DNA of 64,000 bases from Utricularia gibba (lineage: Eukaryota; Plantae; Magnoliophyta): positions 372,001 through 436,000 of the forward strand of contig NEEC01000012.1 of assembly GCA_002189035.1 (NCBI GenBank), given 5' to 3'. The translations under genes and the position numbers were made by a program. The notes beneath the pieces were generated by a model. That model saw only the letters and a program-made list of their open reading frames with translations, was not told the DNA's origin and searched no databases. Numbering within the stretch: position 1 is the first letter of the stretch; every line of letters begins with the position of its first letter. This document shows positions 3,286 to 46,498 of this stretch, in pieces.

Positions 3286-4929
3286 TGATCAAAATGTATC
3301 GCAGCCCTCTTCTCTCATGATCTGTTTGTCAAGAATTTGTAACTATACGTGAACTATATTGTTTTAAACTAATCCTTATAATAGATCATAATTAATGTGA
3401 TGCTATTACATATCCAACAAGCTTAGATCCTTAGGATCATAAACTCTTAAACGAGAATACATGTTGATCTAGAGAAAAGTTATTAAAAAAATTAATAAGT
3501 ATCACATATTAAACAAGAAATAATATAACAAATTAATAAATAAAATGTATTAATCGACAAAAAAGAAAATAATGAAAACATATTATTAATTTAAAAAAAT
3601 ATCATGTTGATCTATAGAAAATTTACAAATAAATAAATAAGTATCATATATTAAACAAGCAAAAATATAACAAATTAATAAATAAAATAATTAATTAATA
3701 CAAAAATAAATTGATAAAATAAACTAGTAAACAACATGTATATCTAACAAATCTAACATAGAATACACATATTGTTACCATGAAAAATCATTATAAAAAG
3801 AAAAAGACTAGAGATTCAGTATAACCTAAATTTATAAAAAATAGAAGATTTTTCTCAAATTCCATTAGAAACCCCACGTTTTTTCAATCTGACAATGAAA
3901 ATGGTTGAAGAATCAATCTAGTTTTAATCTCTCTAAAAAGCACTAATTGGACAATTGTTGTCAAAGATGAATCTTACAAATCAAAATGTCTTGGCAACGA
4001 TGAAGGTTGTAAAATGGTGCTACATCCATGTTGCCATTAGTAATGGCACCTTAAATGTAGGCACTTTTAGTAATGATGCCATGACTTTTCACACGTCATT
4101 ATTAATGGCATCTGATTGTAAGGCACCATCACTAATAGTAGATGCCATTAGTAATCATCTAGTATTATTAATTTATTTCACATTTTGACCTACATTATAC
4201 AATCCATTTTTTCTTGGGAGATGATGCCCCATTTTATTTGATGAGAAGAAAGTCAACTAGGTAAGATATATAGAAATTCTTCAGGTGGTGGATGTCATAT
4301 GCTCACCAAAATGATTAGAGTTTCTGTAGCTAAAAAAGCTACGCATTTGCATACAAGTTACCTTGTCAAACTTCCTTTCCATCTATATCCTAACTCTACA
4401 TGACCCATCAAAGAGTCAATTTTTTTTTTTCCAAAATGGGGTAGCATATCCCCCATAATAGAGATTTGGTTAAGAAGACATAATAAAAAGAAAGAAATTT
4501 CATCTCAATATTAAATTTCATTCATGTATAAATACCAGAATGAAAAAACAAAGCAAAAACTAACTTTTGAGCAAAGTAGAACAACTAAAGGTAAGAGAAA
4601 ATGTTTTTGCATTCTTGGCACATTTTAGGACACTCCTCTTTGTGATCTTTCAATCTCATTATAAATTCTCTTCTCTTATTGTGTGAGCACTTCCATTTTT
4701 CTTTTTTATTATAATTTACTACATGTTTACTCTTTTCTTTCCATAATCACCCAAACGTGATTTGATGTTAGAAAAGTCCACATAAAAAGAATATGGTAAG
4801 TTTAAAACTTTGGAATTTACTCCTGTAAAAATATCTAATACTTCTATCTTGATCGTAATAATTTTGTTACTTTGAATTTGTAGTTTTCTTATTTTCTTTG
4901 GAACATTTATATATTTTTTTCAGATTTTG

Positions 4930-7900
4930 ATTCACCTAAAGATGGACATGGAGATAAATTCATATCAGCCTCTAAATGATAATTCTACTCCATCACTATT
5001 CTCAATCCATGTTGCAACAAAGGAAATTGGGCAAAGTAGTGATAATTTACACCGTCAAAATGAAGATAATTTAAAAGTAAATAATGAAGATACAACTTAT
5101 CAGGGTAAAAAGAAGAAATTGAACTCAAAATGATGGATTCATTATAGATGCTTCTATGATGAACAAAGAAAAAAATGGTAGATTGAATGCAATTATTGAG
5201 GATACTACTTTGAAGATACAAAAAATGATACTTCACATTTGAAGAAACACTTAATGATAAGTTGCTTGAAATGGCACAAAAGACAACTTGATATTAAATA
5301 GTATGTTTTGAAGATGAAAAAAGATGAAGTCCTAAAGAGGTACAAGTATGATCAAAACATTTCAAAATAAAAACCCACAAAAATCATTATTTTATACAAT
5401 TATCCTATAAATATGGTAGATCGTGTGGGATTTAGGAGATTCTATTACTCTTTCAACCCTAGATTCCATATGACATCTAGACATTCTCTTAAAAGAGATA
5501 TCATGAAAATGTATGTAAATCACATATCTAAATGTAATTTGCTATTGGAATAAATGAAATATCGCATAACTATCACCACTAACATATAGATATCATGTAA
5601 TAGCAAAAGAGGATCCATGGCCATTACAAGACATTTAATTGATAATAGTTGGACCTTAAAGAGTTGTCTATTAAGATACAATTAAAAAGTTTGATCTTTA
5701 AAAGTATAATAATTGTGTATCTTATTTAATTATTTGTCTTCAATGAATTCGTATATGTTTCTGCATCCCATATAGATGAAGTGATTTTGGATATATTACT
5801 TGACACTTTTGTGGTTAGAATATAGACAGCAAGCTCTCCACAATTAATATGGAGAATTGTTCTGCAAATGATGTTACAATTGCACCACAATTGACAAACT
5901 CTCAAAAAAGGACTTGCTCCTTGATGAGAATGTATTGCATATGCATTGTAACGCTCATATATTGAATTCAATTGTGCATAATGGCTTAAATGCGATTAAG
6001 GAATCAATACAATACATTCATGAAAGTGTATTGTTCTCATCAGCTTCACCAAAAAGGGTATAGAAATTTGACTATGCTGCAAATCAATGTAAGATTGCAT
6101 TTTATTGAAAATTATTGCTTGATTGTAGTGCAAGGTGGAATTCTACTTTATGATGCTTGAGACAACCATAAATCATAAAGAAGTTCGTTCACATCTTAGA
6201 CACATGGATAAGATATATAAGTACGTGCTTAATAACGATGATTGGGATAAGGCAATAAAGATTTGTGATAAATTGAAAGTTTTTTATGATTAAACATTGA
6301 TGTTTTCATATACTCTTCAGTACACTTCTGTTAAGTGTCATTGTCTCATTATCTTTTAGATTATTTTTATATTTAAATGTGATTAAAATTGTTTAATTAG
6401 AAGTTTATAATATAAGATTTAGGTTTTTATATAGTTTAGGGTAATTTTCCTAAATCTTGTATTTTATTTAATATTTTGTCTAGTTTTAATTAAGTTTTTC
6501 TAGAGATGAACACATGACAGGAAGTATGAGAAAGAAAGCAACAAATGGTGATAAAATAGATCTTCATGAACTGACTCTCTTTGATTTCCAGAAGACTGCA
6601 AACACCTAATCATGAGCCTTGAAGTGCGGTAAACGAGAGTCTCTAACAAATGAAATCATTAAAGTAGTAGTATCAGAGCAAACATTTTCTTGCGAGTCAC
6701 TCCAGTCCAGTAGAACCAGAGGAACACGAAAAGTCGAACAAAGTAGTTCAATCCAGTTCAGTTCGGACAATTCAGTATTTATTTTTCAGTTTTAGTTTTA
6801 CTTGTAATTTATCTCTCTAAAGGATTTTCTTCTAGCTTATCTCTAGAACTTTGTTTTCGTTTCTTAGTTTGTATGGCCGTTCGCGGTTAGAAACTTTCGT
6901 TTATGGGTTGGGATACTCCCAAATTTATGTTTCCTTATTTGATTTTCATTTCTTTTTTGAATCTGATTGGGTTCCGTATGTCTTCGCGTGACTATGTTAC
7001 AATCTTTTTGTAATAGACCCCTTATTCAAGATTTATAGTTAATTGATCATTACCTACAAGTTTTGAAAAAGAGCAAGGTGGAAAGCATCAACTCATGTTC
7101 TTTTGGTAGGAGGGAGATAACGTTTTGTTTGTGGACATACCTCAAGATCAATGGGCATATAGTGACCTCGTATCTCAACTCATTATATCATTGGCAACAC
7201 TCAAGCTCACGGGCACAATTCGACCGTGAAGGTATGATGACAGTACCTCTTATCTTCACGTTCGTCCAAGGAGGAGCAACATCGAGCTATTCCTATGACT
7301 TCTTGCAAGAGAGTGTAAGGGAAGGTAGGTAATTCCTTACTCTTATAACCGAGCACTCGCGAAGATCAAAGAAGAGTGAAGACAAGACGAACATAGCTGG
7401 TCAAGATTTTGATCCAAGGAACATTCTCTTTATTTAAAGTTTATCGCTTAAGTTTATTTCTATTGTTTGTTTACAATCCTCTTATCCCTTTACTCAAGCT
7501 TCATCATTTATGTTTCTCGCACCTTTACTTTACAAAACCGTTTACAAATCGTGACAATTGTATCCGGTGTAACTTCGCCTTTCACCAAAAAACAATTTCA
7601 TGTATTCGACACCCGTACTACGTAGTTTGTATTTTACGAGTTTAAAAATATTTAAATTTTGTTGTGGAAACAATATACATCAACTTCGAATGAGTTATTT
7701 CCCATAGTTTGTGATATAAAGATTAAGTTTGATGAATGGATGAGAAACAAGAACTATATGATTTCTACTTTGGCAACAATGATGCATGAAAAATTTTCTA
7801 AATATTGGGATTCTTTTACTGGATTTTAAGTATTGTAGCAATTTTGGACCTTCGATATAAGATTAGACTTGTTTAGTTTTATTTTCCAAAAATTTATGAC

Positions 7901-8340: not shown

Positions 8341-10461
8341 GTGGACACAACCACATTTCTATTTCACAAGTGGTCATAGACCAAACCCGAAATTTTAGGA
8401 AGGTAGTTGAATTATAAATTCTCAAGGTGTCTAATAGATCACCTTATAAAGATCATAAGTCAACCATATTTGAATGTCAATAAAGCAAAGCCTTACTTAA
8501 TAGTTGATGTGAACTTTCGATCCAAAAAACTCATGCTGTCACTCCAAAAATCTTTACTTAGTCTAACAATGTTCTGGAAGAGCCAATCGCCTACATTGTC
8601 TGCTTTTACAACAATGTGCAACATGTATGCTAACTTTAGGCTATAGTGTCTAATTATCAAATTTCTCCATGATCATCCTTCATAACTTTCTTGCTCTAAT
8701 TGAGGATTTCCATTTAGCATCTACCTCAAATGACTAGTATGAAATAGCTTGAAACAACTTTATGAACATACCAAGAAATCTCGAGAGCGTCCTGTCATGA
8801 CCCTTCATATAGAAAACCAAAAGATAATGATGGTGAAGTTGGAGAATCAAGTGAGAACTCTACTTGAGTTGAATCAAAGTTTTACCCGCTAGCTCACAAG
8901 CAGTACTGAACAATGAGAAATAGGCTACCTAGTCTAAATGCCCAAACTCCTAAGCCCAAGTGATAGGTTTTCGGGTATGTTTGGATAATCCTCAAACAGT
9001 GTAGCTTTCATGTTTGATGAGTTCTAGCCCAATTATCCTTAGCAAAGCTTTTGTATATGTCTTTCTATTTAACATTCTAGTATTATCTAGTTTTGTACAT
9101 ACGACTCCCATTTGCATTTGTTGATAACATCTCACACCTAAAAATACATTTTTATGATGTTCAGTATGAAGATTATATACTTGTTTCTTTAGAGCTTCCA
9201 CAAGATCCATTTTATACTTCTCCCCTCACTTGAACAGATTAGCCTTCAAGTTAAAGCCTATCTCACGATAAACCCACTTAGGCTTTATGGCCTTCTTGTT
9301 ACTAGATTAACATTATGCATATATTCTCATCATAATCAAATGTTATTGGGTTAAGAGATTTTTGACTATTTATCATGATTTCCATAACATCAAATGATTT
9401 TTAGGCATTATGAATAGGACATGAAAAGGCAAAGAGTGATAACCTGAAAAATAGGAAAATTAGAAGTCTTGGCTACTAGAATCAAAATCTACATTATCAA
9501 TTATAAAGTTCTAAAGAAAAAACAAATCAAGAAACTCAAGAACAATTGAGAGAATTATCATCTACTTTGCATGAGTTGTAATAATTCTTCTCAAAAGCTC
9601 TTTATTCTCCCTTGATTATGATATTTTATACCCATATAAAGTCAAGTGAAAAGATAGGTTACAGACTTCCGTTGCCTCTTTCATGACACCATCTTCTTGG
9701 TGGCTTGATATCTCATCCTCTTTTTTCAGGAAAAGCTTATTCCTATCAAGTTAGACAAATTTACAAGGGGTTTTCCATCAAGCACATTTCATTAGGATAT
9801 TCGAGGGGCTACCTTCTTTTTGAGCGATCCAAAGGAAATAAGACTCCTAGCATTGCTCATCGAACAAGAGGTCAATACTTTCTGTATTCTCATGGGATGA
9901 TTGAAAGAGAAGAAGGCACCTCATGCATCCTCATTTAGCAATCTTATATCTTCATCACCATCATCAATCAAGTTCTCATTCTCTCAAATGAGATAGGTCC
10001 CCCTCTTTAGCCCTTTAGTATAATGTAAAAATATTTATTCTATTTCACTGTAATATTAATTTACTTAATTTTTTCTATTAATTTATTATAGGGATTAGAT
10101 TTATTATGTTTCTCTACAATACTCACATATCTATTTCTCACGCAATTTATAATTTAACTATGGGTGACTTGGAATTTTTTTGCATTTTAAAATAATTTAA
10201 ATTTAATCAAATTGTTATTATAAATATTTTATGATTCAAAACGATTCAATTAAAATTGACTTCCATTTTTTAAAACACTCTTCACATGAACCATATGATA
10301 TATGATAAATTAAATTACTTAGTATGTCCATTGGATTAGTTCAAATATATTTTGGGTATGCATTGATGTCTTCATTACCCGCAAGGATCTTGTCCTGAAG
10401 CAATGCATTAATTCAGGGGGAACTAGTAGAGTACAGAGGCCGTGAGGGCAAAGTTCGTTTA

Positions 10462-26630: not shown

Positions 26631-28409
26631 TTCGTCAACACCCCGAGCATGGAGACTCTACGATTAAGAGGTAGTTTTTCTTCAACGGCCTACGATCAAC
26701 AACGCGGTAGCGAAATATTAAAATGAACATACCAGTTGATAAAGAAAGAAGAAGGAAATCGAAATAAAACAAAAGATTATTTTACTTTAAATATTTTTTA
26801 TGTACATCAAAATTATATAAATAATCATATTATTTTAAATATATTTAATTAGCTATTTTTCAATTAAATATGATTTATAAATATATTTATATATCTCAAA
26901 ATAATAAAATTTACGAGTAAATTTTTTTGACTATATTTTAGAATATATCCTTCTAAATATGTAGATAATGTTTTACATTTATGTTAAATATATTTAAATT
27001 TTCATATTTATTTCAATTTTATTTAAATATTCATTTTTTTCTCACATAGAAAACATATTTATGTGTACATATGTACATATTCTATCAAATAAAAAATTTG
27101 AATAAATTTGAAATACATCTCCATGGACTTCTTCACGGGGACGAAGACCCTAACGGGGTGGATGTGGAATGAATTGTAATGGATCAATTGATCAAGACTG
27201 CCCATTTTATCCCTATGTACACCAAATGGTGCCTATGGTTGACGTTTCTATAACTTGAACGAGTTTTATATCTAGATAAATAATATGTATTGTTTATTCA
27301 ACTTGCTGTATATAAAAATTTACGAATAGTGATCAATTGTTGTACATAAAGATTGTAATATTATATGTGAAAATATGCAAAATTCGAAATAAATCTAATG
27401 AATAATCGAGAATTTGTATTCAAGATATTAAAGTAAACTTAATCTATTTGTAAAAACTAAAAATGTGTAATCATGAATACTCATCATTAAACATAAAACA
27501 AAAACAACAGTTGAAAGTCTTCTCCTCACGAGAGTAAGAACAAAGGTTGCAATGAATTCATGTCTAAAAGATTTCGTTTTCATTCCTAAGTTCGAGTTTT
27601 AAGTCATGTTTAATTCTAATACAGAAATAAATTTTATTTCTTTAGTTTTCTTTCTTAATTTTTTTTAATCTTCATGGTGCTTTTACGTTTCCCCATTAAT
27701 GTAAGTAATAATTTTATAAATTTTGATATGTCTCATGTATGATCTGATAGAAAATTTCAATGTTCTTCCTAACAAAATTCTAATTTGTGTAAAAGTTTTC
27801 AAATGGATATCCTTCTTGATTGGAAAACTCCAACCGACTCAGCCTTTGCTTTCAGAAATTTAAATATGGTTTTATTGCTTTATGATAAATATATGCAATT
27901 TAAATAAATAAATGGTTTATTGCTTTATAATAAATATATGTAATTTGAATAATTTTTAATTTATATTCTCCGAAAACAATTTTATTTATTTATTTTTATA
28001 AATAAAATGTTTTTGTGCATAGTATTCTTTAAAATAATTAGCCAAATACAATTACTTTGCAGATAATTCGCTAACTTGAGCTGGAGCCCGAACAGGAACC
28101 CTGATTAGTACATCCATCAAAATAAGAGCGGGGTTATCAACTCCCCTTTCGAATCCCGCCACGAATGACGACTGCCATCCTCGCCCCCAAATTTGTTATC
28201 CGCTTCCTTTCTTTATAACCTCCATGTCTCCAAGCACTGACGATCCCCGACTGCTTTCTCCGTATCCAGGTTTGAGACCTTCTTCTTCTCCAGCTTCTTT
28301 TTTTTTCTGTGCATTTTCTGTCGGAAAAAAGGGTGTAATCTCGAGTTTTTTTTTCTATATTGTACGACATATACTCAGATTTTCGTGCCCGCGTCAATTG
28401 TGTAAAAGA

Positions 28410-30169
28410 ATGGCGTTCTCGTGCTCTTCAAGGGTAAGATTATCTGGAGAAAACATGGTATGTGTGAATAAGCCACATCTGAATGGCCACCGTGTGGTGT
28501 ACAAATGGGGCGATGGATATCAAACTCAGAAGAAGCTTCCTTGCCGTTGTAAATGGAACTTCCAGCAAGTGAAAACCTTATCTCATAAGTGGGCACGGTT
28601 GTTGGATTCAGATTGTGGGCATACGCCTGAGAAGAAGGTGTCTTTCCAGCACCTGAATGCCTTGCTGCGTGAGTCCACTCGGTTTTCAGATTCAATTTCA
28701 GCAACCATCTTATCCACAGTAGCGACCGAGGTATGGATTGCGTTCAAGAATTACAGCTTCTTCTTGCCTGATTGCTGGGTGCTTAGCTCCCTCTTTTACA
28801 GGCCAAGGGGAAAGCGGATTTTCTGAGGGGTCTGAAGCAATGCACTTCTGTTAAGCACACGGTGTTCTTAGTGGCGTTAACCGCTCTGCTGGTCATTCCG
28901 TCTGCAAATGCTGTGGATGCTTTGAAAACGTGTGCCTGCTTGCTGAAGGAATGCAGGTATTGAACCGCAAACTCCTGGTTTTTGTGGCTTCGATCAGAGG
29001 TGTAAAATGCTCCAAACTCGTGTAGGTTGGAACTGGCCAAGTGCATTTCAAACCCATCATGCGCAGCCAACGTCGCATGCCTTCAGACCTGCAACAACCG
29101 CCCGGACGAGACTGAATGCCAGGTTTTCCCAAAAGCTTTCAAGCTATGAAGATTTCGTAAGTGCCTGCTAACAAGTTCTTTCCGCAGATCAAATGCGGCG
29201 ACCTGTTCGAAAACGGGGTGGTGGATGAATTCAATGAGTGTGCAGTTTCACGAAAGAAGTGCGTGCCTCGGAAATCCGATGCTGGTGAGTTCGCCATACC
29301 TGATCCCGCAGTTTTAGTCTCGAGCTTCAACTTGGACAACTTCACCGGAAAATGGTACATAACCAGTGGCCTAAACCCATCATTCGACACCTTTGATTGC
29401 CAACTGCACGAATTCCAGATAGAATCGGGCAGGCTTGTGGGTAACTTGTCATGGAGAATCAGAACTCCTGATACTGGTTTTATCACTCGGACAGCAGTCC
29501 AGAAATTCGTGCAGGATCCCAAGTATCCTGGAATTTTGTACAACCATGACAATGAGTTTCTCCATTACAAAGATGACTGGTACCAATTTATATCTTTCAC
29601 CTTTCCTTCATTGTAAACGTATACTCAGATAGAGCCCTGTGCCATTGGGGGAGCAGGTACATCCTTTCCTCGAAGTTGGACAATGAACCAGATGACTATG
29701 TATTCGTGTATTATCGAGGCAGCAACGACGCATGGGACGGCTATGGGGAGCTGTGGTGTACACCAGGAGTCCGGTCTTGCCAGAGAGCATCATTCCCGAG
29801 CTTGAAAAGGCAGCCAAGAATGTGAGTCGTGACTTCGGGAAGTTCAAGAGGACAGACAATTCTTGTGGGCCGGAGCCCCTCCTGGGAGAGAGGTTGGAGA
29901 AAACAGTGGAAGAAGGTGAAGAGATTATTGCCAAGGAGGTTGAAGAGATACGGGAGGAGATAGAGGAGGAAGTGAGCAAAGTGGCCAGCACAGAGGTTAC
30001 ACTGTTCCAGAGATTGTACGCAGGATTTCAAGAGCTCTTGAAGGATGGGAATTACTTCCTCAAGGAGTTGAACCAAGAAGAGATGGAGATTCTAAAAGAC
30101 CTGAAAATGGAGGCAAGTGAGATTGAAGGGCTTTTCAGCAGAGCCCTGCCTATAAGGAAACTGAGATGA
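28410..30169 (+). CDS. VDE: Violaxanthin de-epoxidase (about 492 aa if one missing G is restored); frameshifted in this sequence
   Basis: Exons 28410-28730, 28802-28956, 29026-29122, 29188-29579, 29657-30169. Contains the Cys-rich [39 protein letters not shown] domain, lipocalin [23 protein letters not shown] and [14 protein letters not shown], and a Glu-rich tail. The frame breaks at G4 29745-29748. Confidence 0.93.
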
Positions 30170-30344
30170 AATTGTTTTTTAGTATGAAGCACACAAATGA
30201 ATTCTTAATACTCACAAGCTAGTATGTGCATTGTTACAAGTCCTTTGTAATCACTCATATCATGAAGATATATACATAAGAACATGGAATGAGAAATATT
30301 GGATCAAGGAACTTTAGTTATGCTGAACAAAATAACATTTTCAG

Positions 30345-30366
30345 AAAGGATACAGACAAAGGATAC
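30345..30366 (-). promoter_or_regulatory. Tandem U12-type 5' splice-site motifs (USSE-like U11 snRNP-binding splicing enhancer) in the 3' region of the U11/U12-48K gene
   Basis: Minus strand reads GTATCCTTT-GTCT-GTATCCTTT, 157 nt downstream of the 48K stop and just downstream of candidate AG acceptors at 30411 and 30389. Confidence 0.8.
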
Positions 30367-30522
30367 AGGCGGCGTAAACAACAAACACCTGCATGATCTT
30401 TTGCTGCTACCTTCGCAACACAAGCAACAGAAAACAACTGTGGTTACAATCAAGAGTAAGATGAGTGTTTGGTATAGGAGACATACCATGAACGTGTGAG
30501 AATGCTAACTGCACTGCATAAA

Positions 30523-33004
30523 TTAGAAAGCATCCTCATGCTTACCATGATACCCCATAGGATCATATCTGTCAAAATCATCCGAGCTTCTGATCCTTGA
30601 TTTTCTCAACCTTTTGTCTCCGAACAGTCCATCATCTTTACCTCTTTTTTCAGGGTCCCTAACTGATGCACCTTCCCTGTACCTGCGCTCTTGGTTATCA
30701 TCTTGTCTCTGTCTTCTCGGACTCTTTATTGCCGCTTCTTTTCTCCATTTTTCATAATCTTGCTCATCACCATCACTTCTTTTTTCATATTCGTGTGATC
30801 TCCGGATAGAATGAACTCTAAGGTCCTGATTTCTGGACTCACGCAAATGCTTTGTTGACTTACTGTGAATTTTTCGATCAAGGGTTTCAGCACTGGAATC
30901 CCTGTCACGTGACATTCTCTCAGTATCTGTAGTTGAACCAACTGGCTTCTGGCCTCTGCTAGAATCATTTCTCAACACCTGAAAACCAAAGGTGAAATTT
31001 TCTGGAATACACAGAACTCAACTCTTTCTTATGCGGAACTTATACAATTTTAGCGTTCATACCTCAGACTTCTTCGGCATCAAAATAGCATTATCCACAT
31101 CTGGATTTTCAGATAAAGCGTCCATATTCTCCTGCATACCTTTTGATTCACACATAACAGCTCCAGCTTTTTTGAGTTCCTCCATGTATTCTTCTATAAT
31201 ATCTCGCATTACCTTCATAAAATACAACCAAAAAAAGTTATCCATCCACAAACCTCAAGCAGGGCTCTCGTTCCCTGCATTAAAAGTGCAAAACAATTAT
31301 GCTGAAAAATATCAAGTACCTCTACAGTGCCCCGCTTCTGTTTTTTCCCACGATATGAAATCCTCCGACGTTTGTAATCTCTCTCCTCAGCCAATAGTTC
31401 CTCCCTTGTCTTCAATTTGTTAGTCTCCTATATATCAAAGCATGAATCCAGATGAGATATATTTTCAAAGCGTGAATCCAATTTTTAAGTCTCCTACGAA
31501 TCAATGCATGAGTGCAATATGTTATTCTTTAATTTTTCCACGAACACAAAGCCATTCTCTTTTGCATATATTTAGTGGGAAAAGAATTTACGCATCTGAT
31601 TACTTGAAAGGCAGACTTCATGCTAAACAAATAAAATGCAGAATGTATTACATACCTGATTACTTGAAGTCTGCCCAAAAAAGGCATCATGTTCAATTAC
31701 AGGCCTATAATCAGAACGCTTAAGTCTCTCCTCATTTGCAAAATTAGACACATGAGCATGCTCCATGTTACTGCAGGCAGAATAAGCCAGGAAAAACATA
31801 AAACTAAAGAGTTAAAAAATCACTTCTTGAAGCAGAGAAAGATAAACATAACAGTACCGTTGATATGCAGATTTCATGTGTGAATAGCGTAGATATCTAA
31901 TTTTCTCTTCAACCATTGATCTTTCCTGCAACGCTGCAACAGCTGCCGCCACTTGGGAGATGAAAATCGTGTCTATCCAAACGGCTTCATAGTTAATGGA
32001 AACAATATTTTCAGCATTTTCGTGTCCTAAGGGAAAGAGTGAAGCACGCAATGAAGATTCCAAAATGCACTCCTTGAGTAGTTCAACTACAAACATCTTG
32101 GCTTGAGCTTCACCATATAATATACTCAATTGCATACATAACCACTTCATTACATCTAGCAACATCGGCAATGGGAACTTCGTTGCCAGTAAATCATCTT
32201 TCTCCATTTTACATTGCTCATTGCACCTGAAAGTCTCGCTACATGCGACCTTGAAACACAACCTTATTAACAAAAGAATATGATCGACCAGAGTAGAATC
32301 TACAGCCACCCCATATCTTGCAGACCAAGAAACTATCCATTGCTTCAACGACAGCTTACAGCATCTAAAGTTCAGAATAGCACGCACAATCCGAAGCGAA
32401 TACTCGACTGGTAGATTCCCCTCCCATGCTTCGACTTCACTCTGGATAGCGCAGATTTCAGATGGAAGAAATCTAATAAATTGGTCAGAATATTGCTCCA
32501 TAGGTGGGATGCGTTCTTCAGCGAAATCCCGACATTCGTTGGCCAGAATCACAGGCAGATTGAAAGAAGGGGAGGCTGAAATGAGGGGGTAACAGGACCA
32601 GGGCAACCCTCGTAAAACGATCCTCCATTCTCAGGAATAGCATATCCATTGTAGGGTTCAAGAGATACCGAAATTTGGGAGGAATCGCCGGGTAGGAAGG
32701 GGGTGGGGACTGAGTGGAAAGTGAGAGCGTTATACCGAAAATTATGTGCGAGAGAAACAGGGCATGGGCAGTTCAGGTAGTGGGAGAAAAGCGACGAAGA
32801 GGGAATCCGATGGTTGGGGTTGAACGCGCATCGGAGAAGAGCCTGGGGATTGGTTTCATCATACGAAATTGGAAGAGAACAGAATACGGAATCAGCGCGC
32901 CGGAGAAGAGAAGAGATCTCGGATACTGCGGTGGAAAGGGAAGAAGAGGTCGCCGGCGGCGGAGGCAGAGAAGAAACGACCGTTTCTAGCGTTGGCGGGT
33001 TCAT
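30523..33004 (-). CDS. SNRNP48: U11/U12 snRNP 48 kDa protein (about 658 aa if one missing C is restored); frameshifted in this sequence
   Basis: Exons 33004-31858, 31770-31656, 31427-31320, 31212-31063, 30978-30523. Contains the CHHC zinc finger CAFNPNHRIPSSSLFSHYLNC, DYRPVIEHD, KTREELLAEERDYKRRRISYRGKK, VMRDIIEEYMEE and an R/D/E/S-rich tail ending FDRYDP. Exon 1 is 1 nt short of the required phase. Confidence 0.9.
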
Positions 33005-33419
33005 GGCCAACGCTCCAATACTTGGCATTCAGCAGCATACCACATCAACAATTCATAGGGTTTCGAAGATCAAATACTGTCCGTCGCATGTGTTCACAAA
33101 AATTGGGGAACAGAAGCCACACCAAACACACACACCTTCATTGCCATTTGCCAACACAACACACACATGTGTGTGATGGGCGCTTATGTAAGATTGTCAA
33201 AGAAAGGTTTAAATGCAGAATGAGTTATTATGTGATGGTTATTTTTTTCATATAAGATGTTGTGATTATATCTTGAATTTGATTGTTCAGAAAGGATTTA
33301 AGGTGACAGATATTGTTTTGAAAAAAATTAAAAATTGTGTTAAATATGTTAGTATATCAAGGATTTCTTAAATTTAGATGTACATACTAAATGGAATTTT
33401 ATTTATTTGATGTTACAAA

Positions 33420-44399: not shown

Positions 44400-46498
44400 T
44401 AAGCCCTAATCTACACAAAATACAAATTGAGAAAACTTGTATAGTGAATGTCATGTATTTCAGCAGATGCAGAATTCAAAATAACGGTAAATGTTAGTCT
44501 AAGCTCGGACCAATAGTGGTAAACAAGTTCGGTAAACAAGATTAGTAAATAATATATGGTCTCAACGCTAAAGGTAGCAAGTACTGGTTTTAACTCAGAA
44601 TAATATAAAGATACCTTAAAGATCTGTAGGTGGTGTGGTGCTAAATGTCTAACTTAAATTATCATGTTCCTATATTCACAACTTCAAATAACTTAAGTCT
44701 ACCCAGGTCATTTGTCATATTTTCGACTAAGCTAGTCCCCCATATCATCACCAACATTGCAATTAGGTCTACCCGCATGCAAAGCATATAGAACTTGGTC
44801 TATCCGGTTCTACTGGTTCTACCTCGGACTAACACCTACTGCTCCCATCTTGATTTTTTGATCTTCCTCTAAATCAAACATTTAAGTTGTGAAGCTACTT
44901 GTTCCCCTCCTTAAATCTACCCATGGCTTGATAGAAACAAGAACTAAGAAACAATGATGAATTTTATTAAGACTTCTAGACCCACACCACTACGCTTCAC
45001 CTCAAGGCACCTCTAGGATTTCAGTTACTCATATTTGAAAGGTAAAAAGTAATGACATTAACATGAAATAATGAAAATGTTAAAAACATCGTGCAGGAGT
45101 TGGGTGCAAAAACTAAAGATATCAACAAACTAAAAAGAAGCAGTAGAGTTCTGGTTTCTGTCTACTACTGTTCACAGTCTGGAACAGTAGCATTGAATTG
45201 AGTCTTGATCCTCTTCCTTCAAGCTGAAGGTTCTTCTCTAGAAAAATCGCATTTCTTTCTCCTTCTCCTTCAGTATTCTTCGTGTTTGAGTTGGGGGAGA
45301 AGCCCCCTCGTGTGTGTTCTGAAAATTCTGGTTGAACCCCTCTACTTTGCGACTCTCTCTCCTCCTCATCCTTCTCTCACCTCTCACTGCCCAAGGCAAG
45401 TACATTTTCTGAAAAATCTGTTGCTCTTGACCCTAACTTGTAGACTGCCACCATGACAGTGTATTCATTGTTGGTGTATGTGTTCTAGAGACAATTAACT
45501 CATTGGAAAATCTTATCTTTTGATATTTACCTTGAATTGTGATCAAGTTTACATAATTGATAAAATCCTCTACTTGATCTATGTGCTATAGAAATTATAA
45601 TGAGATCATAATGTGAGATTCTTCAAGTATTTATGTTTAAGTTAAAAATTCCTTGGCTAGAGTATTTGTGAAATAAGGATATCACAAATACGGATAAGCT
45701 GGCACACATTGAGTTCCCTAAACTGTTAAGGCAATGGTTCTCACAATTGATGTAATGAGATTATTAGAACTTATGTGTGGGTGTCGATTAGAAAATCGAT
45801 TCACTAGATGACTCAGATTCGAGATGCTACTATGGGAAGCTAACCAAGTATCAATAGCAAGATCTCGAATATGACAGCCGTGCAAGTAGGCTTAGACTTG
45901 AGGTCAACAAAGTTATCTTGATCTTAAGCTCACCTTTATGCTCATTACTAATGGGAGCCTAACCATGGCTTACCTAGTATGGATGAGTAGGGATGTGACT
46001 CCATAAGGTTGGAGATAGTTGATTGATCAATAAATGATTTATCACTCATGTTAGCGATGAGATCATATCTCAAGTAATTGCATCAAAGCCTAATAGTAAG
46101 TCCTGGGACCAAGGTAATGACACTCGAATTGTTTGAGTAGGTCATTGAGTGTTAGTGCTTGAATGCAATTATAGGTTCGATACATTAGAAAGACACACAC
46201 CCATGTTCTGGTATCGAATGAGATATAAGTATGACGAAAGATGTTCATTGCATGGTGGCTGGTTATGAAAAGGCTCAATCAATTCCCTGATTATTCTTTA
46301 ATCTTGGGGATCATGATATGTTGCTAGACATCACTCATGATCGATAATGATTGATTTGATTAATTAAGAGTTAATTAATAAATCCATTATTACAGCCTTG
46401 ATTGAAGAAGCCTATAAGGTCATACACAATAGTGGAGTCACTCATCGATATAAAATAGAATGATACAATTAAATGAGATTTAATTGGTAAAGTGGCTA
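44400..46498. mobile_element. Degenerate, probably LTR-retrotransposon-derived non-coding sequence
   Basis: No ORF. Composition and a few motifs (e.g. GTTGCTAGACATCACTCATG, GAAGCCTATAAGGTCATACAC) resemble plant LTR interiors from memory only; boundaries are not defined. Confidence 0.3.

Follow-up and report, generated by a model that had tools for sequence, protein, structure and literature searches.

The DNA analysed here, referred to below as the window, is a stretch of 64,000 nucleotides from Utricularia gibba (GCA_002189035.1, contig NEEC01000012.1, positions 372,001 to 436,000) in which two genes converge, that for U11-48K (SNRNP48) on the minus strand and that for violaxanthin de-epoxidase (VDE) on the plus strand. 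The U11-48K coding region (30523..33028) consists of exons 33028-31858, 31770-31656, 31427-31320, 31212-31063 and 30978-30523, and its four constitutive introns (31771-31857, 31428-31655, 31213-31319 and 30979-31062), as delimited by RNA-derived contigs, are all GT-AG. An earlier, sequence-only reading of this DNA had named 48K as the gene concerned, and this agrees both with a zf-U11-48K CHHC zinc finger (PF05253; E 3.7e-5, which passes the curated Pfam cut-off) in the minus-strand ORF 33028-32549 and with the 131 plant 48K homologues, many of 700-800 aa, that were obtained with the 235-residue exon 1 piece as query. The homologues end near a common motif, F[ED]DRYDPSES, the counterpart of which in the window is ...DDFDRYDPMGYHGKHEDAF directly before the stop. 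The full-length unspliced frame (...DRYDPMGYHGKHEDAF) is closed by a TAA at 30525-30523.

Transcripts of the region were followed in Logan contigs of four runs mapped to 28600-33300, three of them from one organism (A) and from three studies (X1, X5 and X6) and one from a second organism (B; X10). All four runs derive from RNA, because the 48K introns have been removed in each of them. Such contigs are strandless, poorly quantitative and devoid of poly(A) site information, and they show presence rather than absence. The last exon of VDE (PF07137; 29656..30169, plus strand, stop at 30169) is convergent with 48K, and its 3' end extends into the terminal region of 48K. In X1 and X5 contigs are continuous over 29656-30411, from the VDE last exon through to the 48K acceptor described below, and the 3' ends of the VDE and 48K transcripts seem to overlap (29656-30475). 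A number of smaller observations were made on these contigs. In the G run at 32569-32572 the X1 and X5 contigs have one more G than the window, which restores a single 48K frame over exon 1, split in the window between ORFs 33028-32549 and 32606-31812, which do not share a frame; a similar additional G follows 29744 in the VDE gene, and these differences are likely to be homopolymer indel errors of the assembly, or else strain differences. In one X6 contig 30748 is preceded on the plus strand by 15 T, which correspond to a run of A in the sense of 48K and adjoin an internal A-rich stretch of exon 5; they probably stem from internal priming and not from a poly(A) site.

Downstream of the 48K stop the minus strand reads cgccgcctGTATCCTTTgtctGTATCCTTTctgaaaat and contains two perfect copies of the 9-mer GTATCCTTT, a match to the U12-type 5' splice-site consensus, at 30366-30358 (copy 1) and 30353-30345 (copy 2), with a spacer of 4 nt and hence a period of 13. 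The repeat, whose two copies are exactly where the sequence-only reading had placed them, starts 157 nt past the stop of the unspliced 48K mRNA. The 13-nt units GTATCCTTTGTCT and GTATCCTTTCTGA are identical at 10 of 13 positions, which suggests local homogenisation or recent duplication. Across the window GTATCCTTT occurs three times against an expectation of 0.55, the third copy lying at 20371-20363, and a scan for RTATCCTT yielded seven single matches and, as had been claimed, no second tandem. Among 2000 windows simulated with a first-order Markov model, 17 contained a tandem of RTATCCTT within 40 nt. The single U12 5' splice-site-like matches in the window, GTATCCTTT at 20371-20363 (minus) and ATATCCTT at 26945, 27807 and 60985 (plus) and at 45682 (minus), are followed by loose branch-site candidates only. 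A scan of the window against Rfam gave zero matches, and hence no U11 gene was found there.

Splicing upstream of the repeat takes a form that had been foreseen only in part. The candidate splice-site strings listed in the sequence-only reading are all present on the minus strand, namely the donors G/GTAAGC (30545-30544) and G/GTATGT (30486-30485; 37 nt past the stop), the slash marking the cut, and the acceptors AG at 30412-30411, after a T-rich tract, and AG at 30390-30389. The RNA contigs show an alternative U2-type GT-AG intron of 135 nt (30411..30545, minus strand) with the donor catG/GTAAGC, a T-rich tract and the acceptor gcgaAG at 30412-30411. The underlying contig joint runs from 30407 to 30543 and, with the cut moved by +3, gives CT..AC on the plus strand, equivalent to a GT-AG intron on the minus strand; the junction reads catg/gtagcagc, and GT..AG ends are obtained from the +3 cut only. 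This joint was found in three runs from three studies and under two organism labels, at depths of 8.5 (X1), 61.4 (X5) and 5.3 (X10), while the unspliced path, represented by a contig over 30382-30572, has depths of 10 (X1) and 37 (X5), so far as contigs of this kind can be read quantitatively; the spliced and unspliced forms are both abundant, at comparable depth. The acceptor in use lies 44 nt upstream of the tandem and the donor in use 21 nt before the stop, within coding sequence. Thus the earlier proposal of introns confined to the 3'UTR was right about the acceptor at 30411, for which X1, X5 and X10 all have a joint, and wrong about the donor at 30486, the donor actually employed being the further G/GTAAGC that had been mentioned in passing, whose use removes the stop. 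The 76- and 98-nt introns predicted from 30486 (30486..30411 and 30486..30389) were rejected as major isoforms: no such joint, and no use of that donor, was seen in the four runs and the contig over 30382-30572 is unbranched in X1 and X5, so that any use they may have would be rare.

It had also been asked whether the repeat might lie beyond the end of the 48K transcript. In X6 a contig covers 30290-30475 while the depth over VDE is zero, and in X10 a single contig spans the splice into the terminal exon, and together these place the tandem within the 48K transcript. As the X1 and X5 contigs show no break between the VDE last exon and 30411, the repeat may also be present, in antisense, within the VDE 3'UTR.

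The consequence of the alternative splice for the protein can be read from exon 5 joined at 30546/30410 and translated. The intron holds the last six codons and the TAA, and the spliced mRNA encodes ...YHG followed by SSKRSCRCLLFTPPVSFVCILSENVILFSITKVP, the frame passing through both copies of the repeat (...YHGSSKRSCRCLLFTPPVSFVCILSENVILFSITKVP) to end in the terminal exon at a TGA at 30306-30304 on the minus strand. Six residues of 48K are therefore exchanged for 34 that are unconserved and largely hydrophobic, and the tandem, which is noncoding in the unspliced mRNA, becomes part of an extended reading frame in the spliced isoform. The latter has no premature stop and no exon junction 3' of its stop. 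With the original stop removed and a new one supplied by the terminal exon, the geometry speaks against nonsense-mediated decay (NMD) of the type that depends on a stop upstream of an exon junction (EJC-type).

The sequence-only reading had proposed a comparison of 48K 3' regions among plants, and for this nine contigs encoding homologues were fetched (L001-L009). One of these, L006, ends at the stop, which leaves eight loci with enough 3' sequence. A tandem of RTATCCT follows the 48K stop in seven of the eight, always with a period of 12: L002 (GCA_048987585.1), L003 (GCA_039657345.1), L004 (GCA_000375325.1), L005 (GCA_050947905.1), L007 (an RNA contig), L008 (GCA_965154635.1), whose homologue is a distant one of 1009 aa, and L009. 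The repeat lies 235 nt past the annotated stop in L009 and 145-506 nt past it in the other six. In an alignment of the window with those six (A1) the two TATCCT blocks are invariant, copy 1 of the window falling on the first, against an overall identity of 57%. The nearest relative, L009, was aligned separately (A2) and has a matching tandem, with 72% identity to the window over the whole 3' region; the 44 nt between acceptor and repeat in the window (30367..30410) share the blocks GTAGCAGCAA and GGTGTTTG with it. All six of the A1 loci have a pyrimidine-rich AG upstream of the tandem, at 30-53 nt, the corresponding distance in the window being 44 nt. The neighbours downstream differ between loci, and the motif therefore belongs to 48K and not to VDE. 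The tandem of the window is thus orthologous, by position and sequence, to those of seven other land-plant 48K loci. It differs from them in having a period of 13 rather than 12 and in that both of its copies are full 9-mers, whereas the others have GTATCCTC/A in copy 1.

The exception is L001 (GCA_000441915.1), where no tandem was found after the 48K stop, even with one mismatch allowed. The 48K homologue at this locus (4608-7000) is short (532 aa) and without the conserved DRYDPSES C-terminal tail, and it looks as if the feedback element has been lost here in a compact genome; since L001 has a 48K gene and no tandem, at least one lineage can do without the element. Donor position is not constant. 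The donor used in the window is in coding sequence, in contrast to the best candidate donors of the other loci, which are predicted from sequence at 13-272 nt past the stop, and at less than 50 nt past it in L004, L005 and L007. At the position of the donor used in the window, GAT CTG T in L009 has become GGT AAG C. The candidate at 30486 that was not seen in use was considered as a homologue of the 3'UTR donor predicted in L009 and rejected, the GTAAGT of L009 falling in a 57-nt stretch that is missing from the window. In L005 a segment of about 68 nt, comprising the pyrimidine tract and a cttgcAG acceptor, is tandemly duplicated (8930-9070), giving two identical candidate acceptors at 44 and 112 nt from the tandem.

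Elements of this kind are known as USSEs, which are described in PMC5473595 and PMC8329584 as tandem U12-type 5' splice sites that lie in noncoding stretches of SNRNP48 and RNPC3, bind U11, do not themselves serve in splicing and, through exon definition, activate a U2-type 3' splice site upstream. PMC8329584, citing Niemela 2015, reports that the distance from USSE to 3' splice site is under constraint, and PMC3584512, a review by the discoverers that cites Verbeeren et al. 2010 (Mol Cell 37:821), states that plants and animals alike have conserved the feedback. Only two genes, SNRNP48 and RNPC3, are known to carry USSEs (PMC6865273). The repeat in the window combines the defining features at the level of sequence and RNA, being a tandem of U12 5' splice sites located in 48K and conserved in orthologous position, with an upstream U2-type 3' splice site that is used and copies that are not seen as donors in the contigs, and it is a genuine, conserved and expressed instance of the known element. 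The plant U11-48K USSE, as PMC3584512 summarises it, is alike in gene, in the placing of the tandem after the coding region and in having an upstream alternative U2-type acceptor. The window tandem is an orthologue of this plant element, and it is probable, by analogy with the animal system, that it acts as a U11-sensing switch. In proposing such a switch the sequence-only reading was correct as to the nature of the element, its host gene, its location in the transcript, its conservation and the use of the acceptor at 30411, and went astray in the introns that it predicted from 30486.

The vertebrate U11-48K (SNRNP48) USSE belongs to the same gene family and shares the sensor logic and the upstream U2-type 3' splice site, but according to PMC5473595 and PMC8329584 it defines an internal poison cassette exon that leads to a premature stop and NMD; in the window there is no cassette exon and no premature stop, and no use of a downstream donor was seen in the contigs. 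The closest match in layout is the vertebrate U11/U12-65K (RNPC3) USSE, which, according to PMC5473595, likewise lies in the 3' terminal region and activates an upstream 3' splice site; the isoform so produced retains the USSE in its terminal exon. [quoted passage not shown] The 65K system differs in the gene concerned and, by the same account, in that it involves a choice between two acceptors, short and long 3'UTRs, a U1 site and read-through.

Three other explanations of the repeat have to be considered. The one with most in its favour, which is nevertheless improbable, is that the tandem is conserved for a reason other than U11 sensing, as a pyrimidine-rich site for another RNA-binding protein or an element of 3'-end formation, and that the intron is spliced independently of it. 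The variable position of the donor would fit such a view, for with the best donors less than 50 nt past the stop in most plant loci, and before the stop in the window, the geometry of NMD feedback is not conserved; but the letters that are invariant are exactly TATCCT in both copies, of which the TA would be needless for a plain pyrimidine-tract binder, the fixed period of 12-13 nt and the AG at 30-53 nt match the USSE architecture published in PMC5473595 and PMC8329584, and USSEs are known in two genes only, the host being one of them (PMC6865273).

It is much less probable again that either copy, or both, serves as a genuine U12-type donor for a minor intron in the 3' region of 48K. Both match the U12 5' splice-site consensus perfectly, and TCCTTGAT at 30310-30303 on the minus strand, about 35 nt past copy 2 and overlapping the alternative stop, matches the U12 branch-site consensus TCCTTRAY. 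This branch-like motif was not present in the other plant loci. Against a U12 intron, the branch-like motif lacks an AG or AC at the distance of 10-15 nt that would be required, its use would give too short an intron (about 60 nt), a pair of branch site and 3' splice site is absent within 6 kb downstream, and no joint starting at either copy (30366 or 30353) was found in the contigs of the four runs; USSE copies are, moreover, not used as donors according to PMC5473595. An intron beginning at the motifs was rejected on the grounds of the missing joints and of the missing downstream branch site and 3' splice site. Scarcely any weight can be given to the last explanation, that the repeat is a chance or functionless local duplication of 13 nt, or an element of the VDE 3'UTR on the other strand. 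The close similarity of its two units hints at just such a recent local event or homogenisation, and the VDE transcript probably overlaps the site; but the tandem is found past the 48K stop at seven further land-plant loci, that of the distant 1009-aa homologue among them, and with neighbours other than VDE, and the simulated chance of any tandem in 64 kb is below 1%. Conservation in other plants thus excludes chance for the tandem, and its persistence after 48K at loci with other neighbours disposes of an origin as a VDE element.

If the tandem is taken to be a USSE sensing U11, the switch would work as follows. When U11 is plentiful the U11/U12 di-snRNP would pair with both copies of GTATCCTTT and, by analogy with the animal system, would help the major spliceosome, through exon definition, to use the weak acceptor 44 nt upstream (AG 30412-30411). 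This acceptor would be joined to the G/GTAAGC at 30545, the joint that is observed in the contigs, with loss of the 135-nt intron and, with it, of the last six codons and the stop, and the resulting mRNA would keep the USSE in its terminal exon and encode 48K with the 34-residue replacement tail. On the assumption that the spliced isoform is unproductive, 48K output would drop when U11 is high. Likelier routes to this end than NMD would be nuclear retention by USSE-bound U11, as for vertebrate 65K, a protein that is unstable or inactive, or a poor 3' end. We infer that the plant switch need not act through EJC-type NMD, because several of the candidate donors predicted in the other loci are less than about 50 nt past the stop. 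A more specific proposal, and one that can be offered only tentatively, is that the USSE-driven splice in this lineage exchanges the C-terminus and stop of 48K rather than creating a 3'UTR intron, and that the plant 48K USSE works independently of EJC-dependent NMD, by way of U11-mediated nuclear retention of the terminal exon that contains it or of a degron-like tail.

The existence of a switch in this gene was described in 2010 and would not surprise a specialist. For annotation, the analysis explains why two 48K isoforms with differing C-termini are found, and the spliced one should not be called a normal protein isoform. For the plant itself it means that the feedback sensor of the minor spliceosome is probably intact, with RNA showing the USSE-proximal acceptor in use at about the level of the unspliced form. 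Of wider interest is only the finding that plants differ in where the donor lies relative to the stop, which hints at a switch that is independent of the classical geometry of NMD; if this is true, the regulation of plant 48K would be mechanistically akin to that of vertebrate 65K rather than to that of vertebrate 48K.
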